The notes: a model not told the origin generated them from the letters alone. A DNA stretch of 64,000 nt from Macrostomum hystrix (GCA_950097015.1 CATNEN010000005.1:1860001-1924000); one strand, 5' to 3'. Shown: positions 1,012-36,680, counted from the stretch's first letter. Numbers and translations: made by a program.

Positions 1012-1526
1012 ACAAAAGGCTAAACGGCAGGGCTAACCGAGAAAATGTTTAATAGGACAACAACTATGTATTCATCTGAAGCCTAAATCCATGTTACATG
1101 TAGGCCGCATAGCTCGTAAATGGTACACGTAGTCTATGGCAAAAAGGAATAGTTTGTGGAAAAGTTACGACTTGTGTTGTGTCAATAATGTTGTGATGGA
1201 GACGAAAGAGGGGAGGAAAACAAGAAGAATATATTATATTATATTAAATTGGAGTTTTGGAGTGGCGACAAACCCAGTTGAGATGTTTTGGGGCTAAAAA
1301 AGTATTTCAGCTCCGCTCCGCATCCTTGCAGCTGAAGAAAGCTGGTTGGCTGACGAATCGCCAGCTGTCGTGTCTTGCCTTAACATCTCCTTCTCCAACT
1401 CTTCCAAGCTTCTTCCGTCCGAGGTCCGAGGTGCGAGCCCCCACCAAAAGGGCCCGTTCCGGAATCCGAGAGGACGTCAGAGAAGACGCTTTCAGGGCGG
1501 TGCGCTCGCGATAAAAAGGCCGCGAG

Positions 1527-3092
1527 ATGCTGACAGACGCTGCCAAGCGACGCATCTCCTCCTACCTGGTGATGCTCGTGTTCTTTCTCTACAAGGCGTC
1601 CGAGAGCCTTCTGCAGCCGTCAGTCCGGATCTACATCTACCAGCAGGTGTGCCTTGGCGAAGGCATGCCTCTCGCAGTGTGCGAATATCAACAACCGGAC
1701 GATTGGCACTCGATCGGCTTGCGACGCATGACAGCCCAGGAAGAGAACGAGTTGCAGCGAAAGGCGTCCAACTACCTGCTGGCGTACCGGATTCTGCTGA
1801 ACCTGCCCGCCGTGCTCTTCTGCCTGTTCGCGGGCTCGTGGAGCGATCGCGTTGGCCGCAAGTACCCGATGATGCTGCCGCCACTGGGTGCGGTTCTCGC
1901 GGTCGGCTGCTTCGCGATCGGCAGCGCAGTCAGCGGCGCCGCCACCCTCGCCTGGGTGCTGGCGGGCGCCACCGTGTACGGATTCTTCGGCAAGTCCACC
2001 GTCATGACCATGGCCTGCAGCAGCTACGTCGCCGACACGAGCAGCCGCGAGGAACGCACGGAGCTTCTCGGTCGCCTTCTGGCAATGAACTTCTTCGGCA
2101 TCTTCCTGGGCTCACTGCTCACGGGAGTGATCCAGACCTACGGCAGCATCCATGCTGTACTGATTATCATTCTTGTGGTCAATCTAGCTCTTGAGCTGAC
2201 CATTGTGCTGCTCGTCCGAGAGTCTGTAGACACCGCCGACGTCGCTCCCTGCCTTCAGCTGGCCTGTCCGTGTGTGAACACCAGCACCAGGAGCCTCTCT
2301 GTGCGCGACTCCATCGGCTTCCTGCTGCGCAGTCGACCGCAGCAGCTGATGCTGGTGTTTCTGTTCGCTTCTCTCTGCGTCAACCAGATCTGCAAGCAGG
2401 GAGAGCAGGATGTCATTCTGCTGCTGGTCGAGCACGCTCCATTCAACTGGCCCGGCCAGTACTACGGCTACTACCTGTCCGTGTACTATGCCTGCATGGG
2501 ACTCAACCTTGTGCTCATCCTGCCGCTGTTGACGCGCTCTATGAAGCCTCGCGACTCCGCCCTGATCATGATCGGCCTGCTCATGAAGATTATTCGCCTT
2601 GTCATCACCAGCCTCGCCCAGACCACCTGGCTGCTGTTCGCTAGCGCCGTGCTTGGCTGCTTCGCGGGGTTCATTGTGTCCGCCACCAAGTCGATGACTT
2701 CCAAACTGGTCGACGAAGCCGAGATAGGCCAGACATTCTCGCTGCTGTCCTGCGCTGAAGCACTAGCCAATCTGATTGGTCCGGTGGTGTTCATGCCGAT
2801 CTACGCCGCCACCGTCGACTTGTTTCCTGGAATGATCTTTAGCCTTGACGCTGGAGTGCACTTTCTTCTGCTCTGCTGCTTCCTGAAGATCTACCTAAGC
2901 GGCGGTGACGCTGATGACAACGAACAGGCGTTGGTTGGCGCCGAGGAGGGCGCCGGTTGCGGCGGGGACGTCAACGGCGAGCTGACGCCCATCGCCGGAA
3001 CGGAGCGGGGCAAGCCAGGAATCAGTGTGCATCGAGTTCGTCAGCGTTCAACCGGAGAGTCCAACGAAGCAGCCGATTTGGACAAACCTTGA
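1527..3092 (+). CDS. Intronless MFS transporter, SLC46/PCFT (proton-coupled folate transporter)-like, 521 aa
   Basis: About 12 hydrophobic segments; GSWSDRVGRK MFS motif A; YVADTSSREERT; SKLVDEAEIGQTFS; GC-rich coding composition. Confidence 0.88.
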   Translation: MLTDAAKRRISSYLVMLVFFLYKASESLLQPSVRIYIYQQVCLGEGMPLAVCEYQQPDDWHSIGLRRMTAQEENELQRKASNYLLAYRILLNLPAVLFCLFAGSWSDRVGRKYPMMLPPLGAVLAVGCFAIGSAVSGAATLAWVLAGATVYGFFGKSTVMTMACSSYVADTSSREERTELLGRLLAMNFFGIFLGSLLTGVIQTYGSIHAVLIIILVVNLALELTIVLLVRESVDTADVAPCLQLACPCVNTSTRSLSVRDSIGFLLRSRPQQLMLVFLFASLCVNQICKQGEQDVILLLVEHAPFNWPGQYYGYYLSVYYACMGLNLVLILPLLTRSMKPRDSALIMIGLLMKIIRLVITSLAQTTWLLFASAVLGCFAGFIVSATKSMTSKLVDEAEIGQTFSLLSCAEALANLIGPVVFMPIYAATVDLFPGMIFSLDAGVHFLLLCCFLKIYLSGGDADDNEQALVGAEEGAGCGGDVNGELTPIAGTERGKPGISVHRVRQRSTGESNEAADLDKP

Positions 3093-3887
3093 CGGCTCAC
3101 AGTAGCAATGCCGAACTCCACATGGGAATTAATCATCTTCGTGAATGAAGCCGGCTCAGGGAAAATACTCGAGGACTGGCTGCAGTACATGAAGACAGTG
3201 CAAGAAGAGAAATGAAAATTAACGCATTGAGCTCAGCTGATAACAGTTCATCTCTCATGTCGGGGCAGTTAAGCAAAGCGTGTTGTTTTGTGACTGCTGC
3301 CCACTAAAGTAAATTATTCATGTTTTATTTAAACAGCTGTCTGTTGGCAACTGTTAGTTCAAATGAAACTGTAACGATTCCTTTTGTGACATTCAGGAAC
3401 CCCGAATAACGAATGTACTTTAAAGGACAGTTCAAACACTCTTTCGATATAATTATTGTTAAGCAAAAGAATGTAACCGCAAAGTCACTGATTGTTAATA
3501 AATTTTATTGAGTCTCGTCGGGAAGAGAGAAAAAGTTCAAGATGGACTCTGCACTGAGCAATGACGGATTTCACAGCATTCAAACACTATTTATTCTATG
3601 TTCTTAATTAATTTATTTGTACAGTAAGCAACAGTAAGCAACCTATTAAAACAAATCAACTTGACTGGGCCAGTGTCAATGGCACAATCCGTCATATTGT
3701 CCATAAAACATCAATATGCTTTACGGTTGGACACATTTTAGCTTATAAAAATATACATGGACTTCTACAGCTGGATGCTAGCTATAGAAGTCCATGGTTG
3801 CATACAAGAGGAACTCTTATCAGAATTAAAATATTATTGAAGCCTTGACAAGTCCGCACTTATAAAGTAATCCTATTATATATTGAT

Positions 3888-20780: not shown

Positions 20781-23700
20781 ATGGGTAGATTACAGATTGT
20801 TCTGGTTCTGGCAGCAATGGCCGCCATTCTCGGTTTGTATCTGTTGTCATTGTCAGTCACCAGCCTAGTAACCAGCTTGGTACCGCCAAGCTTCTATGCT
20901 ACTGCGGCCAGGTTTCCGGGAGGATGCGGCGACGAGTGGCCTCCGCCGAAGCATATTGATCCCGAGGTCTTTCAAAGTATCGAACAGGTGAGTCAACGGT
21001 GTCTAACAGTAGATAGTTGTGTCTAACATGAAACCCTTGTGTCTAACATGAAACCCTTGTGTCTAACATAAAACCCTTGTGTCTAACATGAAACCCTTGT
21101 GTCTAACAGTAAATAGTTGTCTCTAACATGAAACACTTGTGTCTAACAGTAAATAGTTGTCTCTAACATGAAGCACTTGTGTCTAACATGAAACTCTTGT
21201 GTCTAACATGAAACACTTGTGTCTAACATGAAACTCTTGTGTCTAACATGAAACCCTTGTGTCTAACATGAAACCCTTGTGTCTAACAGTAAATAGTTGT
21301 CTCTAACATGAAACCCTTGTCTCTAACATGAAACCCTTGTCTCTAACATGAAACCCTTGTCTCTAACATGAAACACTTGTGTCTAACATGAAACCCTTGT
21401 GTCTAACATGAAACCCTTGTGTCTAACATGAAACCCTTGTGTATAACATGAAACCCTTGTCTCTAACATGAAACCCTTGTCTCTAACATGAAACACTTGT
21501 GTCTAACATGAAACCCTTGTGTATAACATGAATCCCTTGTGTCTAACATGAAACCCTTGTGTCTAACATGAAACCCTTGTGTCTAACATGAAACCCTTGT
21601 GTCTAACATGAAACCCTTGTCTCTAACATGAAACCCTTGTCTCTAACATGAAACCCTTGTGTCTAACATGAAACCCTTGTGTCTAACATGAAACCCTTGT
21701 GTCTAACATGAATCCCTTGTGTCTAGTATGAAACCCTTGTCTCTAACATGAAACCCTTGTCTCTAACATGAAACCCTTGTCTCTAACATGAAACACTTGT
21801 GTCTAACATGAAACCCTTGTGTATAACATGAATCCCTTGTGTCTAACATGAAACCCTTGTGTCTAACATGAAACCCTTGTGTCTAACATGAAACCCTTGT
21901 GTCTAACATGAAACCCTTGTGTCTAACATGAAACCCTTGTCTCTAACATGAAACCCTTGTCTCTAACATGAAACCCTTGTCTCTAACATGAAACCCTTGT
22001 CTCTAACATGAAGCACTTGTGTCTAACATAAAACACTTGTGTCTAACATGAAACCCTTGTGTATAACATGAATCCCTTGTGTCTAACATGAAACCCTTGT
22101 GTCTAACATGAAACACTTGTGTCTAGCATGAAACCCTTGTGTCTAACATGAAACCCTTGTCTCTAACATGAAACCCTTGTGTCTAACATGAAACCCTTGT
22201 CTCTAACATGAAACCCTTGTGTCTAACATGAAACCCTTGTGTCTAACATGAAACCCTTGTGTCTAACATGAAACCCTTGTGTCTAACATGAAACCCTTGT
22301 GTCTAACATGAAACCCTTGTGTCTAACATGAAACCCTTGTGTCTAACATGAAACCCTTGTCTCTAACATGAAACCCTTGTCTCTAACATGAAACACTTGT
22401 GTCTAACATGAAACCCTTGTCTCTAACATGAAACCCTTGTGTCTAACATGAAACCCTTGTGTCTAACAAGTGATAGCAAACCTAGCAAAACTTTTTCAAT
22501 TAACTCTCAGGTAATACGCGACAAAGGCTTTCAAACAAGAAGCTACAATGTGACGACAGCCGACGGTTACATCCTGGGTGTGCAGAGAATCCTGCCGAAG
22601 GTTCAAAGTCGCAGAACACCCGTTCTACTAGTTCACGGACTGTTAGACAGCGCCTTCACCTGGGTCTCCAATTTGGCCAATCAATCGCTTGCCTACCGTT
22701 TAAGCGAGGCAGGCTATGACGTTTGGCTAGGCAACGTTCGCGGCAATACCTACAGCAAGGCGCACGTGCGGCTGGACCCGACCCATTTGGACTTCTGGAA
22801 ATTCTCCTGGGATCAGATGGCCGAGTTTGACCTGCCCGCAATGATTCAAGCTGTCTTAAGAGAGACTGGAGCTAAGCAGGTGTACTATGTGGGACACTCG
22901 CAGGGCACGGAGATTGCACTTGCTGGTAAGAAATTCCATTTAAATTATCACCAAACATGGTTAATTATCACTCCAGAGACAATACTTATCACTCACTACT
23001 AAAGCACCACCAAAGCAATATCACCAATTAACACCACCCAATCATCGCCACCCAATCAACACCACCCAAACAACACCAACCAATCAAAACTATCCATTCA
23101 ACACAACCAATCAGCACCCGTCAAAAAACGCCGCGAAATCAAAAGCACCGGAAAGGTTTGTCGTACAATTTACGCCCTGAGGGCCAACCTCCAAGGCATT
23201 GCGAAATGTACACGGACGATGAGAAAGTCAGGGCAGATGTACACACCTGTGTGCCTGTGTGCTCAGGAGTCAGCGAAATTGGCAGAATTGCCTCCTAGCG
23301 GGCTGCGGGTCTAGCGTCACCTATGACTCGTATTTAACAACCAAATCAAAACCAACCCATCAACGCCATACAATCAACACGCAATAGTGTGCAAATAATC
23401 CCATCCCGCCGTCAGCTTGGAGCCAAAACCGCACCGTCGGCTCGCTCGTCAAAGCCGCAGCACTGCTGGCTCCAGTCGCCACCGTCGGCTACATCGAGAG
23501 TCCCATCCGGCTGATCGCACCATTTGCCACCAGCCTAGCTGACGCTATCGACTTCTTTGGTCACGGCGAGTTTCTGCCAACCACCAGACTGCTGAAATTT
23601 CTTTCCCTAGCCGTATGCGGCGACGCACTATCGCCACTGTGTAGCAATGTGATATTCCTGCTGTGCGGTTTTGACTGTCGCTACACAAACATGACCAGAC

Positions 23701-31442: not shown

Positions 31443-31715
31443 GCCACAATTAAAAGACTGAAATGGTGTAGTGAGTGTGGTCGGTTTGGGATCCCTGGCC
31501 TAGAGTACTATCAAGTATAATACGAATAATCACTGAACAAATAGTTAGGATGCTGTGCTTCCGCCTAGCACTGGTGGCCGGAGCGTTTAGCTACATACTA
31601 AAAAGACAAACTTAAAAATATATCAAATAAAAATCAAGGTGAACTCAGATTTGCTTCTTATTTTGCACTAGGAATAAATTTTTAAATTGCGGAAAAATCG
31701 GTACTCAATAATGAC

Positions 31716-34502
31716 TCAGTATGTCAATGCACTAGGCGGCAAAACCTTATAAGGATTAAGAATTCCCTGAGGATCTAGCAATCGTTTAATCTGAACCATA
31801 ATTGCGACAGCTTCGGGGCTTTTGCAGTGACCCAAATAGGTGCTCCTCTTCCAGCCCAGGCCGTGCTCGGCACTTATTGAACCGCGCCGCTCGGCCAGCC
31901 AATTATAAACGAACGCCTCCAACTTTGGCCATAGACTATAGCAGGCAGCCTTCTCGGGATTGGCCGTCACCACTAGATGGAGGTTACCATCGCCAAGGTG
32001 ACCAAAACCCGCGATGCGAATTAGGCCGCTCTGACTGGCAGTCCAGTTAAATTCCAATTTCGTAGCTTCCATCAAGCGCAGCATGTCTAGTCGATTGTCA
32101 ACACTGGCGTCAAACTGCATGTAGCCGCCGGCGGGACCTGCGTCCGCCACCAGAGCTTCGAAGGCGCGCTCGCGTAGCGACCAAATCGAATTGAATTGGC
32201 GCGAATCGCTGGCCACAACGGCGTCGAAGTCTGACTTTGAATAACAAAACTCTTTCCATTATTTATACACTGAAACATAATACGCTCATAATTTAGCACA
32301 CTTGGAATCTGGGTTTAGGCGGGAGTGTGTGCATTAGAGGTTAGATGTTAGGCGAGTATGTTCATTTATGGTTTAGAGGTAAGGCAAGTGTAGATTATGG
32401 GCGAGTGGGTACTTTAGGGGGTTCGAAGCTAGGCGAGTGTGTACAATGGGGGTAGAGGTTGCGCAAGAGTTTATATTAAGGGGTAGAGGCTAGGCAAGTG
32501 TGGTGTACATTAGGGGTAGAGGCTAGGCAAGTGTGGTGTACATTAAGGGGTAGAGGCTAGGCAAGTGTGGTGTACATTAGGGGGTAGAGGCTAGGCAAGT
32601 GTGGTGTACATTAAGGGGTAGAGGCTAGGCAAGTGTGGTGCACATTAAGGGGTAGAGGTTGGGCGAGTGTGTACATTATGGACCATTAGAGGCTAGTGTG
32701 TACGTTAGGGGCTTAGAAGTTTGCACCTGGAATGCATGGTCTTGATGCAACGAGGTGAAATCTCAGCTCACCTTCCCCACCAAGAGAAGTGGTAATACGA
32801 TCAAGAAAATCGGCCAATTTTTCAGCATCATGCAATCCTGCCGAGTCGCATGAAGCCGTCTCAACAAGGGCGTAGAAGCTGCTAGCTTTGCCAGAGTTGT
32901 CACTCAGCGGACAGTTCAATCGGAGATTATTAGACACCGCCGACATTGTGGCCGAGTCCATAAATTCGAAGGCCGATAAGGTCTCTGATAGCGTGGAACG
33001 CGCCGCTGAGAAAATGGCCAGAACTGACTTAGATGGGTGGACGAGAATTTTAGTGAGATGAAGACAACTTAGTCTTGTAGGTGTACATAGTATTTTAAGA
33101 AGTGCACTGAAGACAAATAATAACAAACACAATTAATTTAGATAAGAAGACTAGCCAAAAGCATTGCTAGCGAATTGGCTAGCTGTACACAGCCTTTGGA
33201 AGCGCTGCGCTATGCCACGGGAGTACATTTCATCCCACTGGGCTAGGTGTAATTGCTTCTCTCTCTATCTCTGTCCATGGACTGGAGAGGCCCTCACATG
33301 TTATTTAAATATTTAACCCAGAGTAGCGATGGTACCACTTTATATAGATGGGTCAACGGAAGAATTAAGGAATGGTCAAGCTACCTGTGCAACATAAAAG
33401 TATATGCTAACTAAGGCACCACCTGAAAGCTCTGGCAGCCAATCAGAGTCAGTTGTACATTAGCGGGCCTAGGAGGACAGACCAGAGCCACTTTAGTCAG
33501 CACTCCGAGTGTGCCCTCGCTGCCAATCAACAGCTGAGCAAGGCTTCCTCTGTCATTTAAAGAAATCCGATTAGCGCAACCAGCTAGACAATCTAGAACC
33601 TCGCCATTTGGCAGAACAGCTTCAACGCCGCGAACGGAGGAGCGCAGAGAACCGTAGCGCAGTACGCGAACTCCGCCAGCGTTTGTAGATAAATTGCCGC
33701 CCAACTGACAGCTGGCCTTGGCGCCAAGATCTAGCGGGACAGTGAGCTGATGATCCGACAGGGCAGAGTCCAGCTCGGCTAGGACTAGACCCGCCTCTGC
33801 AATCACCAGGCCGGAGATCGGATCGATCTGCGTGATGCCATTTTTTATTTCCAATTAATTTTTTATGATAAAAATACACTGACGTACATGTATCTGTGTG
33901 GCCTACTTGTTGGCTGCAAGTAGACTATTGATTGGACCAAATGATTTATGACTGACGTTTTCAGCGGCTCATATCTCAACATAACATTATGTTATACGAG
34001 CGTATATGCAAGAATCAACGAAGCACACAGACTGATTCACCTCAAGTATGTGATTCATTCGGCCTAGAGACAACAACACCTCGTCGAATATGGGCACACC
34101 GGCGCCAGCCAATCCAGTGTTGCCTCCCTGTGGCACAATGGCTATCCTTTGCGCACTGCAATGTTGCAAGATCTGCGAAACTTCGCCGACAGAGCCCGGC
34201 CTTAGAAGCACATTACTTTGACCGCGGCAATCTCTAGGCCAGTCAGTGTTGGCCTTCTCTAATACCGACTCATCCGTGATCACGTTGTTAGCACCGACAA
34301 TGTCCGAGAACACTGACAGATCCTTGGATTCTACCCGACTGTAGGGACCCCGTGTTAGTCGACTGCCTTGGGCATCGATCGGAGGATAAACGACAGACGC
34401 CAACGGCGGGCTAATTTTCGAATAGGTCGCCAATCTCGCGGCCGCTGTTGCAGCGGCGAAGCTCGCGCGACGAACGAGAATGTGGCGAAACAGACACTGC
34501 TG
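31716..34502 (-). CDS. D2HGDH: FAD-linked D-2-hydroxyacid dehydrogenase, D2HGDH-like; exons 34502..34041, 33827..33423, 33027..32772, 32230..31716 (~546 aa if a Met is supplied)
   Basis: PQGGNTGLAG, LDLGAKASCQLGGNLSTNAGG, GSEGTLG, SAFEFMD, GHLGDGNLH, SAEHGLG, DPQGILNPYK. Splice phases are consistent. No in-frame ATG. Confidence 0.85.
32340..32720 (+). repeat. ~33 bp degenerate satellite (GGGGTAGAGGCTAGGCAAGTGTGGTGTACATTA) in D2HGDH-like intron 3
   Basis: Visible tandem units. Confidence 0.88.
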
Positions 34503-35056
34503 CTGCAGATTTTAAGTAGGGTTCGCATTACTGATCCGATGTTTGTACTTTTAATATAGTTTGATTTTTTCGATCTTTGGCTTGAGTAATGTTATAAGTC
34601 TAAAAATATATTCTCATATCGCAAAGTTTGGCCATTGAACCTATACAAACAAAAAATATTTTCGAAAAAAAATCCAACATGAATTCTCACAATCAAAATT
34701 AACAATGAAAATTTCTTACTACTAAAAGTTGTTGAGGGGCTTCCTGAGCTCGATTCCGCGGCGAGGCCACATTTATTTGGGGCGCAGTGGCGGAAAAAAG
34801 GCTCGGGAGCTTGCTGTGCAGTTTACACCCTTCAGGGCAACCTCCTAGGCACAGTGAGTGTGTGCACTGCCTGACGATGAGAATGTCAAGGCAGATGTGC
34901 ACACCTGTGAGTTTGTGCCTGTGTTCGCTGCACCGGAGTCAGCGAAATGGGTAGAATTGCCTCCTCGCCGGTTGCGGGTTTAGTGTTGTTATCATTTATA
35001 AAATTTGTTGAGAATTTGAAAAACCATTTCTTAAACTTCAATTGAAGCATCACTTA

Positions 35057-35171
35057 AAAGCTCTGGCAGCCAATCAGAGTCAGTTGTGCATTAGGGAGCC
35101 TAGGAGGACAGACCGGAGCCACTGAATTCAGCCCCTTGAGTGTGCCCCCGCTGCTAATCAACCGCTTCCTC
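35057..35171 (-). pseudogene. Diverged duplicate fragment of D2HGDH-like exon 2 (33426..33550)
   Basis: AAAGCTCTGGCAGCCAATCAGAGTCAGTTGT..CCTAGGAGGACAGACC occurs at both places. Confidence 0.8.
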
Positions 35172-35918
35172 GTACCCTAAGCAATGAGTTTCTGAAATCG
35201 AAGTTTAGTAATGGCAGTTCTTAAATCACATGAACACGTTTTATAATTTTTTTGTCAAAAAAGCTTACTTAGTGAGATTGTGAGCAAGCTTACTTAGAGA
35301 TCCTCAACTTCATATTACTAGTATTAATTTTATTTGATAAGTTGAAAAACAAGATAAAAAGTCAGGATAACAAATATTTTGTTTGAAAAAAAACTGACAA
35401 TAAAACAGCACTGGATATAAGGAGAAGTACTCGCTAGTCGCAAGTAGGCCTGTGTATTTCGAGTCTGTAGTTTATGAAATTACAACATACTTATTTCCAC
35501 TGCAGAATAGTCAGATATTATAGCAGGCATTTATTTAAATAGCGTTTTTGTTTGCATAGACAAGGTTAAAATATGGAAAAGCGACACTGTAAGGTATTTT
35601 TCAATGAGAGCAGAATATATTTCAACCGGAATTTAGATGACAAAAATCAAAAGACAGTAGAATCCTACTGGTTTAGTTAAGACTAACCGTTTCAGTTTCT
35701 CGTTACGTTTTCCTGGACCTAACCTGGCCTATATTAATTTGTTTACATGGGAATACATACTATTATTAATAACACGGAGAGTTTAACCTACCAAAGTAAG
35801 CACAAATTTGTAGAAAAAAAACAATTTAACAGACAAAGCAATAGACCGATAGTCACTAACAATAGGCTTCTATTTCATCGACTCCAGAACCACAGAGGAC
35901 GATGAGAAAATCGATATA

Positions 35919-36680
35919 TTAAGCCTTCTTCTCGGCTTCCTTCTTGGCGAGTTCGGCCTTTTCTAAATCTTTGATAAGTTGTTCCACTCGTGACTGCGGC
36001 AATAGGCTCAAATAGGTGTTAGAATCGCGTCTAGTGAATACGGCTATTTCAACTTTGTCGGCTGACAATTTACTCATGGTCATAGATTTGTTGAGCACTT
36101 TAATAGTGAGACTGAGCGCTTCATCAATGCTCATATTCTCGGCGTGTTCCTGATCCAGCATGCTATTGGCTGCGGCGGCATTGCTGCCAATGCATGTGGC
36201 CTTCCAGCCGCTGAAGTTGCCGCTGGGGTCGCTTTGGTAAAGCTGATAGCCGTAGTGCAGATCCCAGCCAGCGTACAGCATGCTGACACCGAACGGTCGC
36301 CTACCGCCAAACATTGTATAGGCGTGTTTGATATCGCAGATAGATGACACCAGTTGTTCAACAGGAATTGGCTCCTGGTACTGAAGCAAGTAGCGTTGAG
36401 CGCTAAGACGCATCTCATCTATTAGCACATTGGCATCGGCTGTAATACCGCCAACTGCAACGCACATATCGTCATTGATCTTGTAGATCTTCTCGGAGAA
36501 GTTAGGCTCGTCTAATAGTTTGTTAATATTACGCCGCTCAGCAGCCAGAATGATGCCGTCGCGAGCTAGGATGCCCATACAGGTGCCAGCGTGGCCAACA
36601 GCCTCCATGGCGTACTCAACCTGATAAAGGCGACCCTCCGGAGAAAAGGTTGTAGTGCGAGTGTCGTATCTGCGAGCCAT
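35919..36680 (-). CDS. PSMA4: Proteasome subunit alpha type-4 (alpha3), intronless, 253 aa
   Basis: [28 protein letters not shown]; [16 protein letters not shown]; [17 protein letters not shown]. Confidence 0.97.

Follow-up and report, generated by a model that had tools for sequence, protein, structure and literature searches.

A Spliced Leader Brings an In-Frame AUG to a Start-Less D-2-Hydroxyglutarate Dehydrogenase Gene in Macrostomum hystrix

A First Exon Without a Start Codon

We analyzed a 64-kb window of the Macrostomum hystrix genome (64,000 nt; GCA_950097015.1, CATNEN010000005.1:1860001-1924000) and find it highly probable that it holds an expressed, four-exon orthologue of mitochondrial D-2-hydroxyglutarate dehydrogenase (D2HGDH) whose first exon lacks a start codon, whose start is the terminal AUG of the spliced leader (SL), and whose N-terminus is presequence-like. 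In assembled RNA contigs the spliced leader is joined in frame to the first D2HGDH exon, and the gene is complete except for its start codon. Coordinates are those of the window, and the features of the gene lie on its minus strand (-).

Read directly on the minus strand from 34514, the sequence runs TAA AAT CTG CAG CAG CAG TGT CTG TTT CGC CAC ATT. The D2HGDH frame translates as NLQQQCLFRHILVRRASFAAATAAARLATYSKISPP... after the TAA, is also given from 34514 as NLQQQCLFRHILVRRASFAAATAAARLATYSKISPPLASVVYPPIDAQGSRLTRGPYSRVESKD..., and leads into the FAD-binding domain. The in-frame TAA (34512..34514, -) lies in the outron, 9 nt upstream of the trans-splice acceptor, and forms the upstream end of the frame; because it closes the frame, no genomic start further 5' is possible in exon 1. 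The sole in-frame ATG of the exon is at 34058 (codon 149), within the FAD_binding_4 match. With the TAA upstream and codon 149 the next in-frame AUG, no genomic AUG is able to yield full-length D2HGDH. Another ATG, in the outron (34526..34528, -), begins 14 nt upstream of the TAA, hence out of the D2HGDH frame, and opens a 57-aa ORF in the ORF listing (34355-34528). This +1 frame is also open across the same stretch of ~50 codons. Since two frames are open there, the open D2HGDH frame is by itself weak evidence of coding, and it is the RNA junction that carries the case. Three tandem CAGs (34505-03, 34502-00 and 34499-97) each fall on a codon boundary. The preliminary description, drawn from the sequence alone, had pointed to the in-frame TAA with no ATG ahead of the catalytic domain, to a nearby ATG out of frame, and to three CAGs ending on codon boundaries, and the minus-strand sequence confirms each of these readings.

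The Spliced Leader Junction in RNA

The RNA evidence comprises assembled contigs from three samples of one study, not raw reads. Four sequencing runs of this 2020 study contain 55-59% of the words of 31700-35000, approximately the exonic share of that interval. Assembled contigs of three such runs (X2, X3 and X4), and one run of another study, were aligned to 31500-35918. The X2, X3 and X4 contigs skip introns with GT..AG ends and thus derive from RNA; they give no isoform proportions, and rare variants are dropped from them. Each run has one contig (918, 889 and 890 nt, respectively; depth 18-26) that is identical to the genome over 33423-33827 and 34041-34503. Beyond 34503, these contigs carry 22, 21 and 22 letters, respectively, that align nowhere in 31500-35918. 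The letters themselves were printed for X4 alone, X2 and X3 being represented by number and place only; they read ATGCAATAAATTGAGTCTTCGC on the plus strand and GCGAAGACTCAATTTATTGCAT on the gene strand. The published Macrostomum lignano SL is CGGTCTCTTACTGCGAAGACTCAATTTATTGCATG (PMC8629364), with strong conservation reported in M. hystrix and M. cliftonense. Together with the shared G at 34503, the X4 letters are identical to the last 23 nt of the M. lignano SL: their end, ...TTGCAT, plus this G gives the TTGCATG with which the published SL ends.

At the junction, the Macrostomum leader ends ...CUCAAUUUAUUGCAUG, and the joined sequence reads SL...GCAUG followed by CAGCAGUGU. The leader tail is ...TTATTGCATG; the exon letters are CAGCAGTGT after acceptor 34503, CAGTGT after 34500 and TGTCTG after 34497. 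Of the three CAGs, the X2, X3 and X4 contigs use the first as acceptor (34503..34505, -; AG = 34504-34503). The leader AUG stands in its place, the G at 34503 being common to the genomic CAG and the final AUG of the leader. In sequence and contigs alike, the second and third CAGs (34497..34502, -) form codons 2 and 3 (Gln-Gln) of the observed mRNA, which begins AUG CAG CAG UGU CUG UUU CGC and translates in frame as MQQCLFRHIL.... The junction and its frame are direct observations. Use of the second or third CAG (34500, 34497) as acceptor is seen in none of the contigs, which lose minor variants. Among the joints listed for the contigs, none leads from 34503 to an upstream position, and no cis-spliced upstream exon appears.

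These data bear on the product foreseen in the preliminary description, M(Q)(Q)CLFRHIL generated by trans-splicing at any of the three acceptors: the MQQ form, made at the first CAG, is present in the contigs, and the other two acceptors are not seen. The same description had proposed looking in RNA for an SL-exon junction, and the genomic match of all three contigs stops at 34503, with SL letters following in X4. The contrary outcome that it named, an exon further upstream that is joined in cis and carries an in-frame ATG, appears in none of the contigs. When TTATTGCATG was searched against the 64-kb window, it returned two matches with 1 mismatch, fewer than expected by chance, so the window holds no SL gene.

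Gene Structure and Orthology

Exon 1 (34041..34502, -; 462 nt, 154 codons), defined by contigs and homology, encodes the putative presequence and the first half of the FAD_binding_4 domain and ends in phase 0. It is followed by intron 1 (33828..34040, -; 213 nt), whose joint is found in X2, X3 and X4, and by exon 2 (33423..33827, -; 405 nt), which encodes the second half of FAD_binding_4 according to contigs and Pfam. Intron 2 (33028..33422, -; 395 nt) is defined by a contig joint, exon 3 (32772..33027, -; 256 nt) by contigs and homology, and intron 3 (32231..32771, -; 541 nt) by a joint in X2 only. All of these introns have GT..AG ends. Exon 4 (31650..32230, -), defined by contigs and Pfam, encodes the FAD-oxidase_C domain, the stop at 31718-31716, and a short 3' UTR that extends to ~31650-31667. 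The coding lengths of 462, 405, 256 and 515 nt keep the frame to the stop, giving a protein of ~546 aa including the initiator.

Homology searches were run exon by exon. Against the human D2HGDH chain (PDB 6lpn, 481 residues), exon 1 matches residues 8-111 (E 1e-27), exon 2 residues 115-243 (E 2e-37), exon 3 residues 246-315 (E 7e-10) and exon 4 residues 323-475 (E 2e-31), such that the four exons are colinear with the human mitochondrial enzyme over chain residues 8-475. Pfam FAD_binding_4 (PF01565) is detected in exon 1 (E 6e-10) and exon 2 (E 1e-20), and FAD-oxidase_C (PF02913) in exon 4 (E 2e-31). Among solved structures, each of the four exons scores highest against human D2HGDH, with LDHD and glycolate oxidase far behind. 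Gene model and orthology are likewise observed directly: judged by its sequence, the gene is an orthologue of mitochondrial D-2-hydroxyglutarate dehydrogenase, with predicted enzyme activity. When the exon-1 ORF was used in a word-based protein search whose length window excluded full-length orthologues, only five distant matches (41-49% identity) were returned. No close Macrostomum relative was among them, and none was informative on the start-less N-terminus.

The Leader AUG and the N-Terminal Extension

The published leader is 35 nt long and contains no other AUG, making its terminal AUG the first in the mRNA. The frame that it sets is that of D2HGDH, runs without a stop through the 155 codons up to the exon boundary, and passes in phase 0 into exon 2. 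When 23 leader letters were prefixed to exon 1, the following AUGs were found at +130, +232 and +292, all out of frame and opening ORFs of 3-6 aa. A start at codon 149 would leave out half of the FAD-binding domain. That no other AUG is productive is seen directly, and since the SL AUG is the first, is in frame and has no productive competitor, we take it as the start. Its context is weak, with U at -3 and C at +4. From precedent in Schistosoma, we infer that ribosomes would start at this codon.

That precedent is well developed. Flatworm SLs all end in an AUG that is usable as an initiator (PMC9851317, PMC12582326). In Schistosoma mansoni, 28% of trans-spliced mRNAs have the SL AUG in frame, and >40 cDNAs depend on it; experiments in Schistosoma have also demonstrated initiation at the SL AUG (Cheng et al. 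2006 via PMC9851317, PMC12582326). The supplement to the Macrostomum genome paper treats the AUG end of flatworm SLs and its use as an initiator in general terms. The earlier premise that flatworm SLs end in AUG and can supply the initiator Met therefore agrees with the literature, and the X4 letters end in this way.

The predicted protein begins with a presequence-like N-terminal extension (residues 2-49 from the SL Met; 34359..34502, -), delimited by composition and homology; D2HGDH homology to the crystallized human enzyme begins at residue 50. The extension contains 5 Arg/Lys and 1 His, with zero Asp/Glu in its first 43 residues, and the first 40 residues comprise 5 R/K, 0 D/E and 19 A/S/T/L. 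Its maximum 18-residue hydrophobic moment is 0.39, compared to 0.44 +/- 0.10 for composition-preserving shuffles, 67% of which reach it. Inspection of the extension by eye shows no canonical R-3 or R-10 cleavage motif. The Arg/Ala/Ser-rich likeness to a presequence that was noted earlier is therefore upheld in composition, the stretch being basic and acid-free over 43 residues, and not in hydrophobic moment, which is not above that of shuffles. Mitochondrial import of D2HGDH via this N-terminus is likely, on the basis of composition and orthology.

These observations fit a simple model. The pre-mRNA would be trans-spliced, with the Macrostomum SL joined to the AG at 34504-34503, and removal of the outron would eliminate the out-of-frame ATG 34528 as well as the in-frame TAA. 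No AUG of the mRNA would then precede that of the leader, which is in frame with CAG CAG UGU CUG, and the product of ~546 aa would begin MQQCLFRHILVRRASFAAATAAARLATYS. Its basic, acid-free extension of 49 residues would most likely act as a mitochondrial presequence.

Upstream Neighbor

A PSMA4-like gene lies upstream of D2HGDH on the same strand, and its contigs end at 35377-35431. The distance from these ends to acceptor 34503 is ~875-930 nt, including a repeat of ~230 nt. An operational criterion for operons requires genes on the same strand, a trans-spliced downstream gene, and a repeat-adjusted distance of <1 kb (PMC8629364). The PSMA4-like/D2HGDH pair falls within this <1 kb criterion, which is a loose one. 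No contig covers 35052-35347 or 34504-34650, and contigs are present on D2HGDH introns; such holes in contig coverage prove nothing. PSMA4-like and D2HGDH are thus a candidate SL-resolved operon at most.

A high-depth element was also observed in the intergenic region, at 34741-34971. An Rfam scan of this region returned only a sub-threshold CRISPR-DR26 hit (E 0.04), taken as chance, and a tRNA scan of it returned no tRNA. The element is thus not recognizable as a tRNA-derived SINE or as a known RNA.

Alternative Explanations

A cis-spliced exon between 34515 and the PSMA4-like gene could provide the true ATG of a major isoform, leaving the SL form minor or non-productive. The contigs lose rare variants and are absent from 34504-34650 and 35052-35347, so the region is partly unsampled. 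However, it is the main exon 1-2 contig, at gene-level depth of 18-26, that runs into foreign letters at 34503 in all three runs; in X4 these letters are the SL, and no joint leads from 34503 to an upstream position. The upstream depth is due to a dispersed repeat and does not mark a unique exon. We therefore give this explanation very little credence. An error in the assembly, or a pseudogene defect such as an indel that shifts ATG 34528 out of frame, could also account for the missing start, and the 57-aa ORF opened by that ATG does overlap the presequence region in another frame. This is exceedingly improbable: contigs of three samples match 34041-34503 without substitutions or gaps, each of the four exons is intact and conserved, and the genomic match of the contigs ends at 34503, which means that ATG 34528 is absent from the mature mRNA. 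As trans-splicing removes this ATG, its displacement by a sequencing error is ruled out. Both ATG 34528 as the D2HGDH start and the assembly error or pseudogene were rejected on these RNA contigs, which match the genome exactly and depart from it at 34503.

The remaining alternatives accept the SL junction and differ on its consequences. The SL may serve only to cap or resolve the transcript, with translation starting at a non-AUG codon (e.g. CUG 34493-34491) or, by leaky scanning, at Met149. The weak context of the SL AUG is compatible with such a start, and non-AUG initiation is described as widespread. Against this, the SL AUG is both first and in frame, its use as an initiator has been shown in Schistosoma (Cheng et al. 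2006 via PMC9851317), ribosomes that scanned past it towards Met149 would first encounter three AUGs in other frames (ORFs of 3-6 aa), and beginning at Met149 costs half of the FAD-binding domain; a start elsewhere than at the SL AUG is thus highly unlikely. Conversely, the SL AUG may be the true start of an extension that is no presequence, in which case the enzyme would be cytosolic or located elsewhere and SL-dependent targeting would fail. The hydrophobic moment, which does not exceed that of shuffles, and the R-3/R-10 motif, not evident by eye, are points in its favor. On the other side, the human mitochondrial enzyme ranks best among solved homologues, the extension sits exactly upstream of the start of the mature crystallized chain, and it is basic, rich in Ala/Ser/Leu/Arg, and acid-free over 43 residues; we consider a non-mitochondrial destination unlikely. 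Initiation at the SL AUG, followed by a presequence-like N-terminus, remains our preferred reading.

Discussion

Use of the SL AUG as a start has been known in flatworms since the work of Cheng et al. 2006, and D2HGDH is a further case. Our literature search found no paper, in the text available, naming D2HGDH or listing SL-AUG-dependent genes in Macrostomum. The value of the example lies mainly in annotation. The Macrostomum genome annotation trimmed the spliced leader before mapping; because the SL is removed ahead of this step, such pipelines are blind to the D2HGDH start codon. The gene would then be truncated (e.g. at Met149) or called partial, and its targeting peptide missed. D2HGDH thus offers an RNA-supported example for gene finders that add the SL AUG at trans-splice acceptors, and would add one more conserved metabolic enzyme to those whose translation depends on trans-splicing.

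The case also raises the question of whether SL-AUG starts are enriched among mitochondrial proteins genome-wide. A strong version, in which Macrostomum nuclear genes for mitochondrial proteins are systematically start-less and SL trans-splicing gates their synthesis and import, strikes us as doubtful. A neutral version is possible: presequences tolerate nearly any N-terminal residues, such that acceptors may drift in and genomic ATGs decay.

Comparison With Known Systems

The closest parallel is the class of SL-AUG ORFs in flatworms (Cheng, Cohen, Ndegwa and Davis, J Biol Chem 2006), for which a 2023 article in Brief Bioinform uses the name 'slORFs' (PMC9851317). In these, as in D2HGDH, an AUG-ended SL is joined at the acceptor of a first exon without an in-frame start, and its AUG shares the frame of a conserved ORF. 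Those examples come from Schistosoma, whereas here the animal is the free-living Macrostomum, the gene is D2HGDH, and we infer translation from the SL AUG. The 3' letters of the leader agree with those described in studies of the SL and operons of M. lignano (Ustyantsev and Berezikov 2021, PMC8629364; Wiberg et al. 2023, PMC10468722), and D2HGDH resembles the operonic genes of that species in being conserved and located <1 kb downstream of a gene on the same strand. The available text of these two papers contains no list of SL-AUG-dependent genes, and in our case no polycistronic precursor is seen in the contigs. Every sequence-level feature of the flatworm SL-AUG initiator mechanism is present in D2HGDH.

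A role for trans-splicing in mitochondrial targeting also has a counterpart among flatworms. [quoted passage not shown] There too, SL trans-splicing would decide whether a mitochondrial N-terminal extension is included in the mRNA. The Echinococcus gene has two alternative variants, whereas for D2HGDH one form is seen here, with no sign of a cytosolic isoform. The human D2HGDH gene encodes its own initiator ATG. Its product (PDB 6lpn), a mitochondrial FAD-linked oxidase, shares with the predicted Macrostomum protein the same two Pfam domains, near-full colinearity and an N-terminal extension; what sets the two apart is the initiator, which belongs to the gene itself in human and would come from a separate RNA in Macrostomum.

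Transcripts and a dispersed repeat upstream of D2HGDH

Upstream of D2HGDH, the window carries FAU, a snoRNA host gene and a PSMA4-like gene, the last of which lies on the same strand as D2HGDH and is encoded by a single ORF (35919-36680, minus strand). When RNA contigs were placed on the window, those of the PSMA4-like mRNA stopped at 35377-35431, and its 3' UTR is therefore approximately 490-540 nt long. Within this 3' UTR, the Rfam scan returned a CRISPR-DR26 match (35640-35664, minus strand) whose score of 27.5 bits (E 0.04) falls below the gathering score of 39; in a eukaryote, it was taken as a chance match. Placement of the runs' contigs on the locus left 35052-35347 without any match, and consequently no contig bridges the PSMA4-like gene and D2HGDH.

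Between these two genes lies a dispersed repeat (34741-34971). Summed contig depth over it reaches 1500-3100 in the RNA contig sets, where many of the matching contigs differ in flanking sequence. A further copy, of 75% identity, is found within the window at 23163-23317. Scans of the intergenic region for tRNAs and Rfam families identified no tRNA and no Rfam match for the repeat.

Overlapping ORF and intronic contigs of D2HGDH

A 57-aa ORF (34355-34528, minus strand) overlaps the presequence region of D2HGDH in another frame. Its start codon, ATG 34528, falls within the outron, the part of the pre-mRNA removed upon trans-splicing at the acceptor at 34503, and the ORF is thus translatable only from RNA that has not been trans-spliced. 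In runs that contain spliced D2HGDH contigs, further contigs of low depth (4-14) lie inside introns 2 and 3, at 32264-32441, 32512-32576, 33000-33229 and 33106-33452; they may stem from precursor RNA not yet spliced, from retained introns or from carried-over DNA.

Sequence variation in a separate study

Run X1, which comes from a different study and bears a different organism label, contains the PSMA4-like 3' UTR (35451-35918). Compared with the window over this interval, the X1 sequence carries six substitutions, lacks 5 nt at 35717 and has AT inserted at 35570; these differences point to another strain, or to a sister species, as its source.
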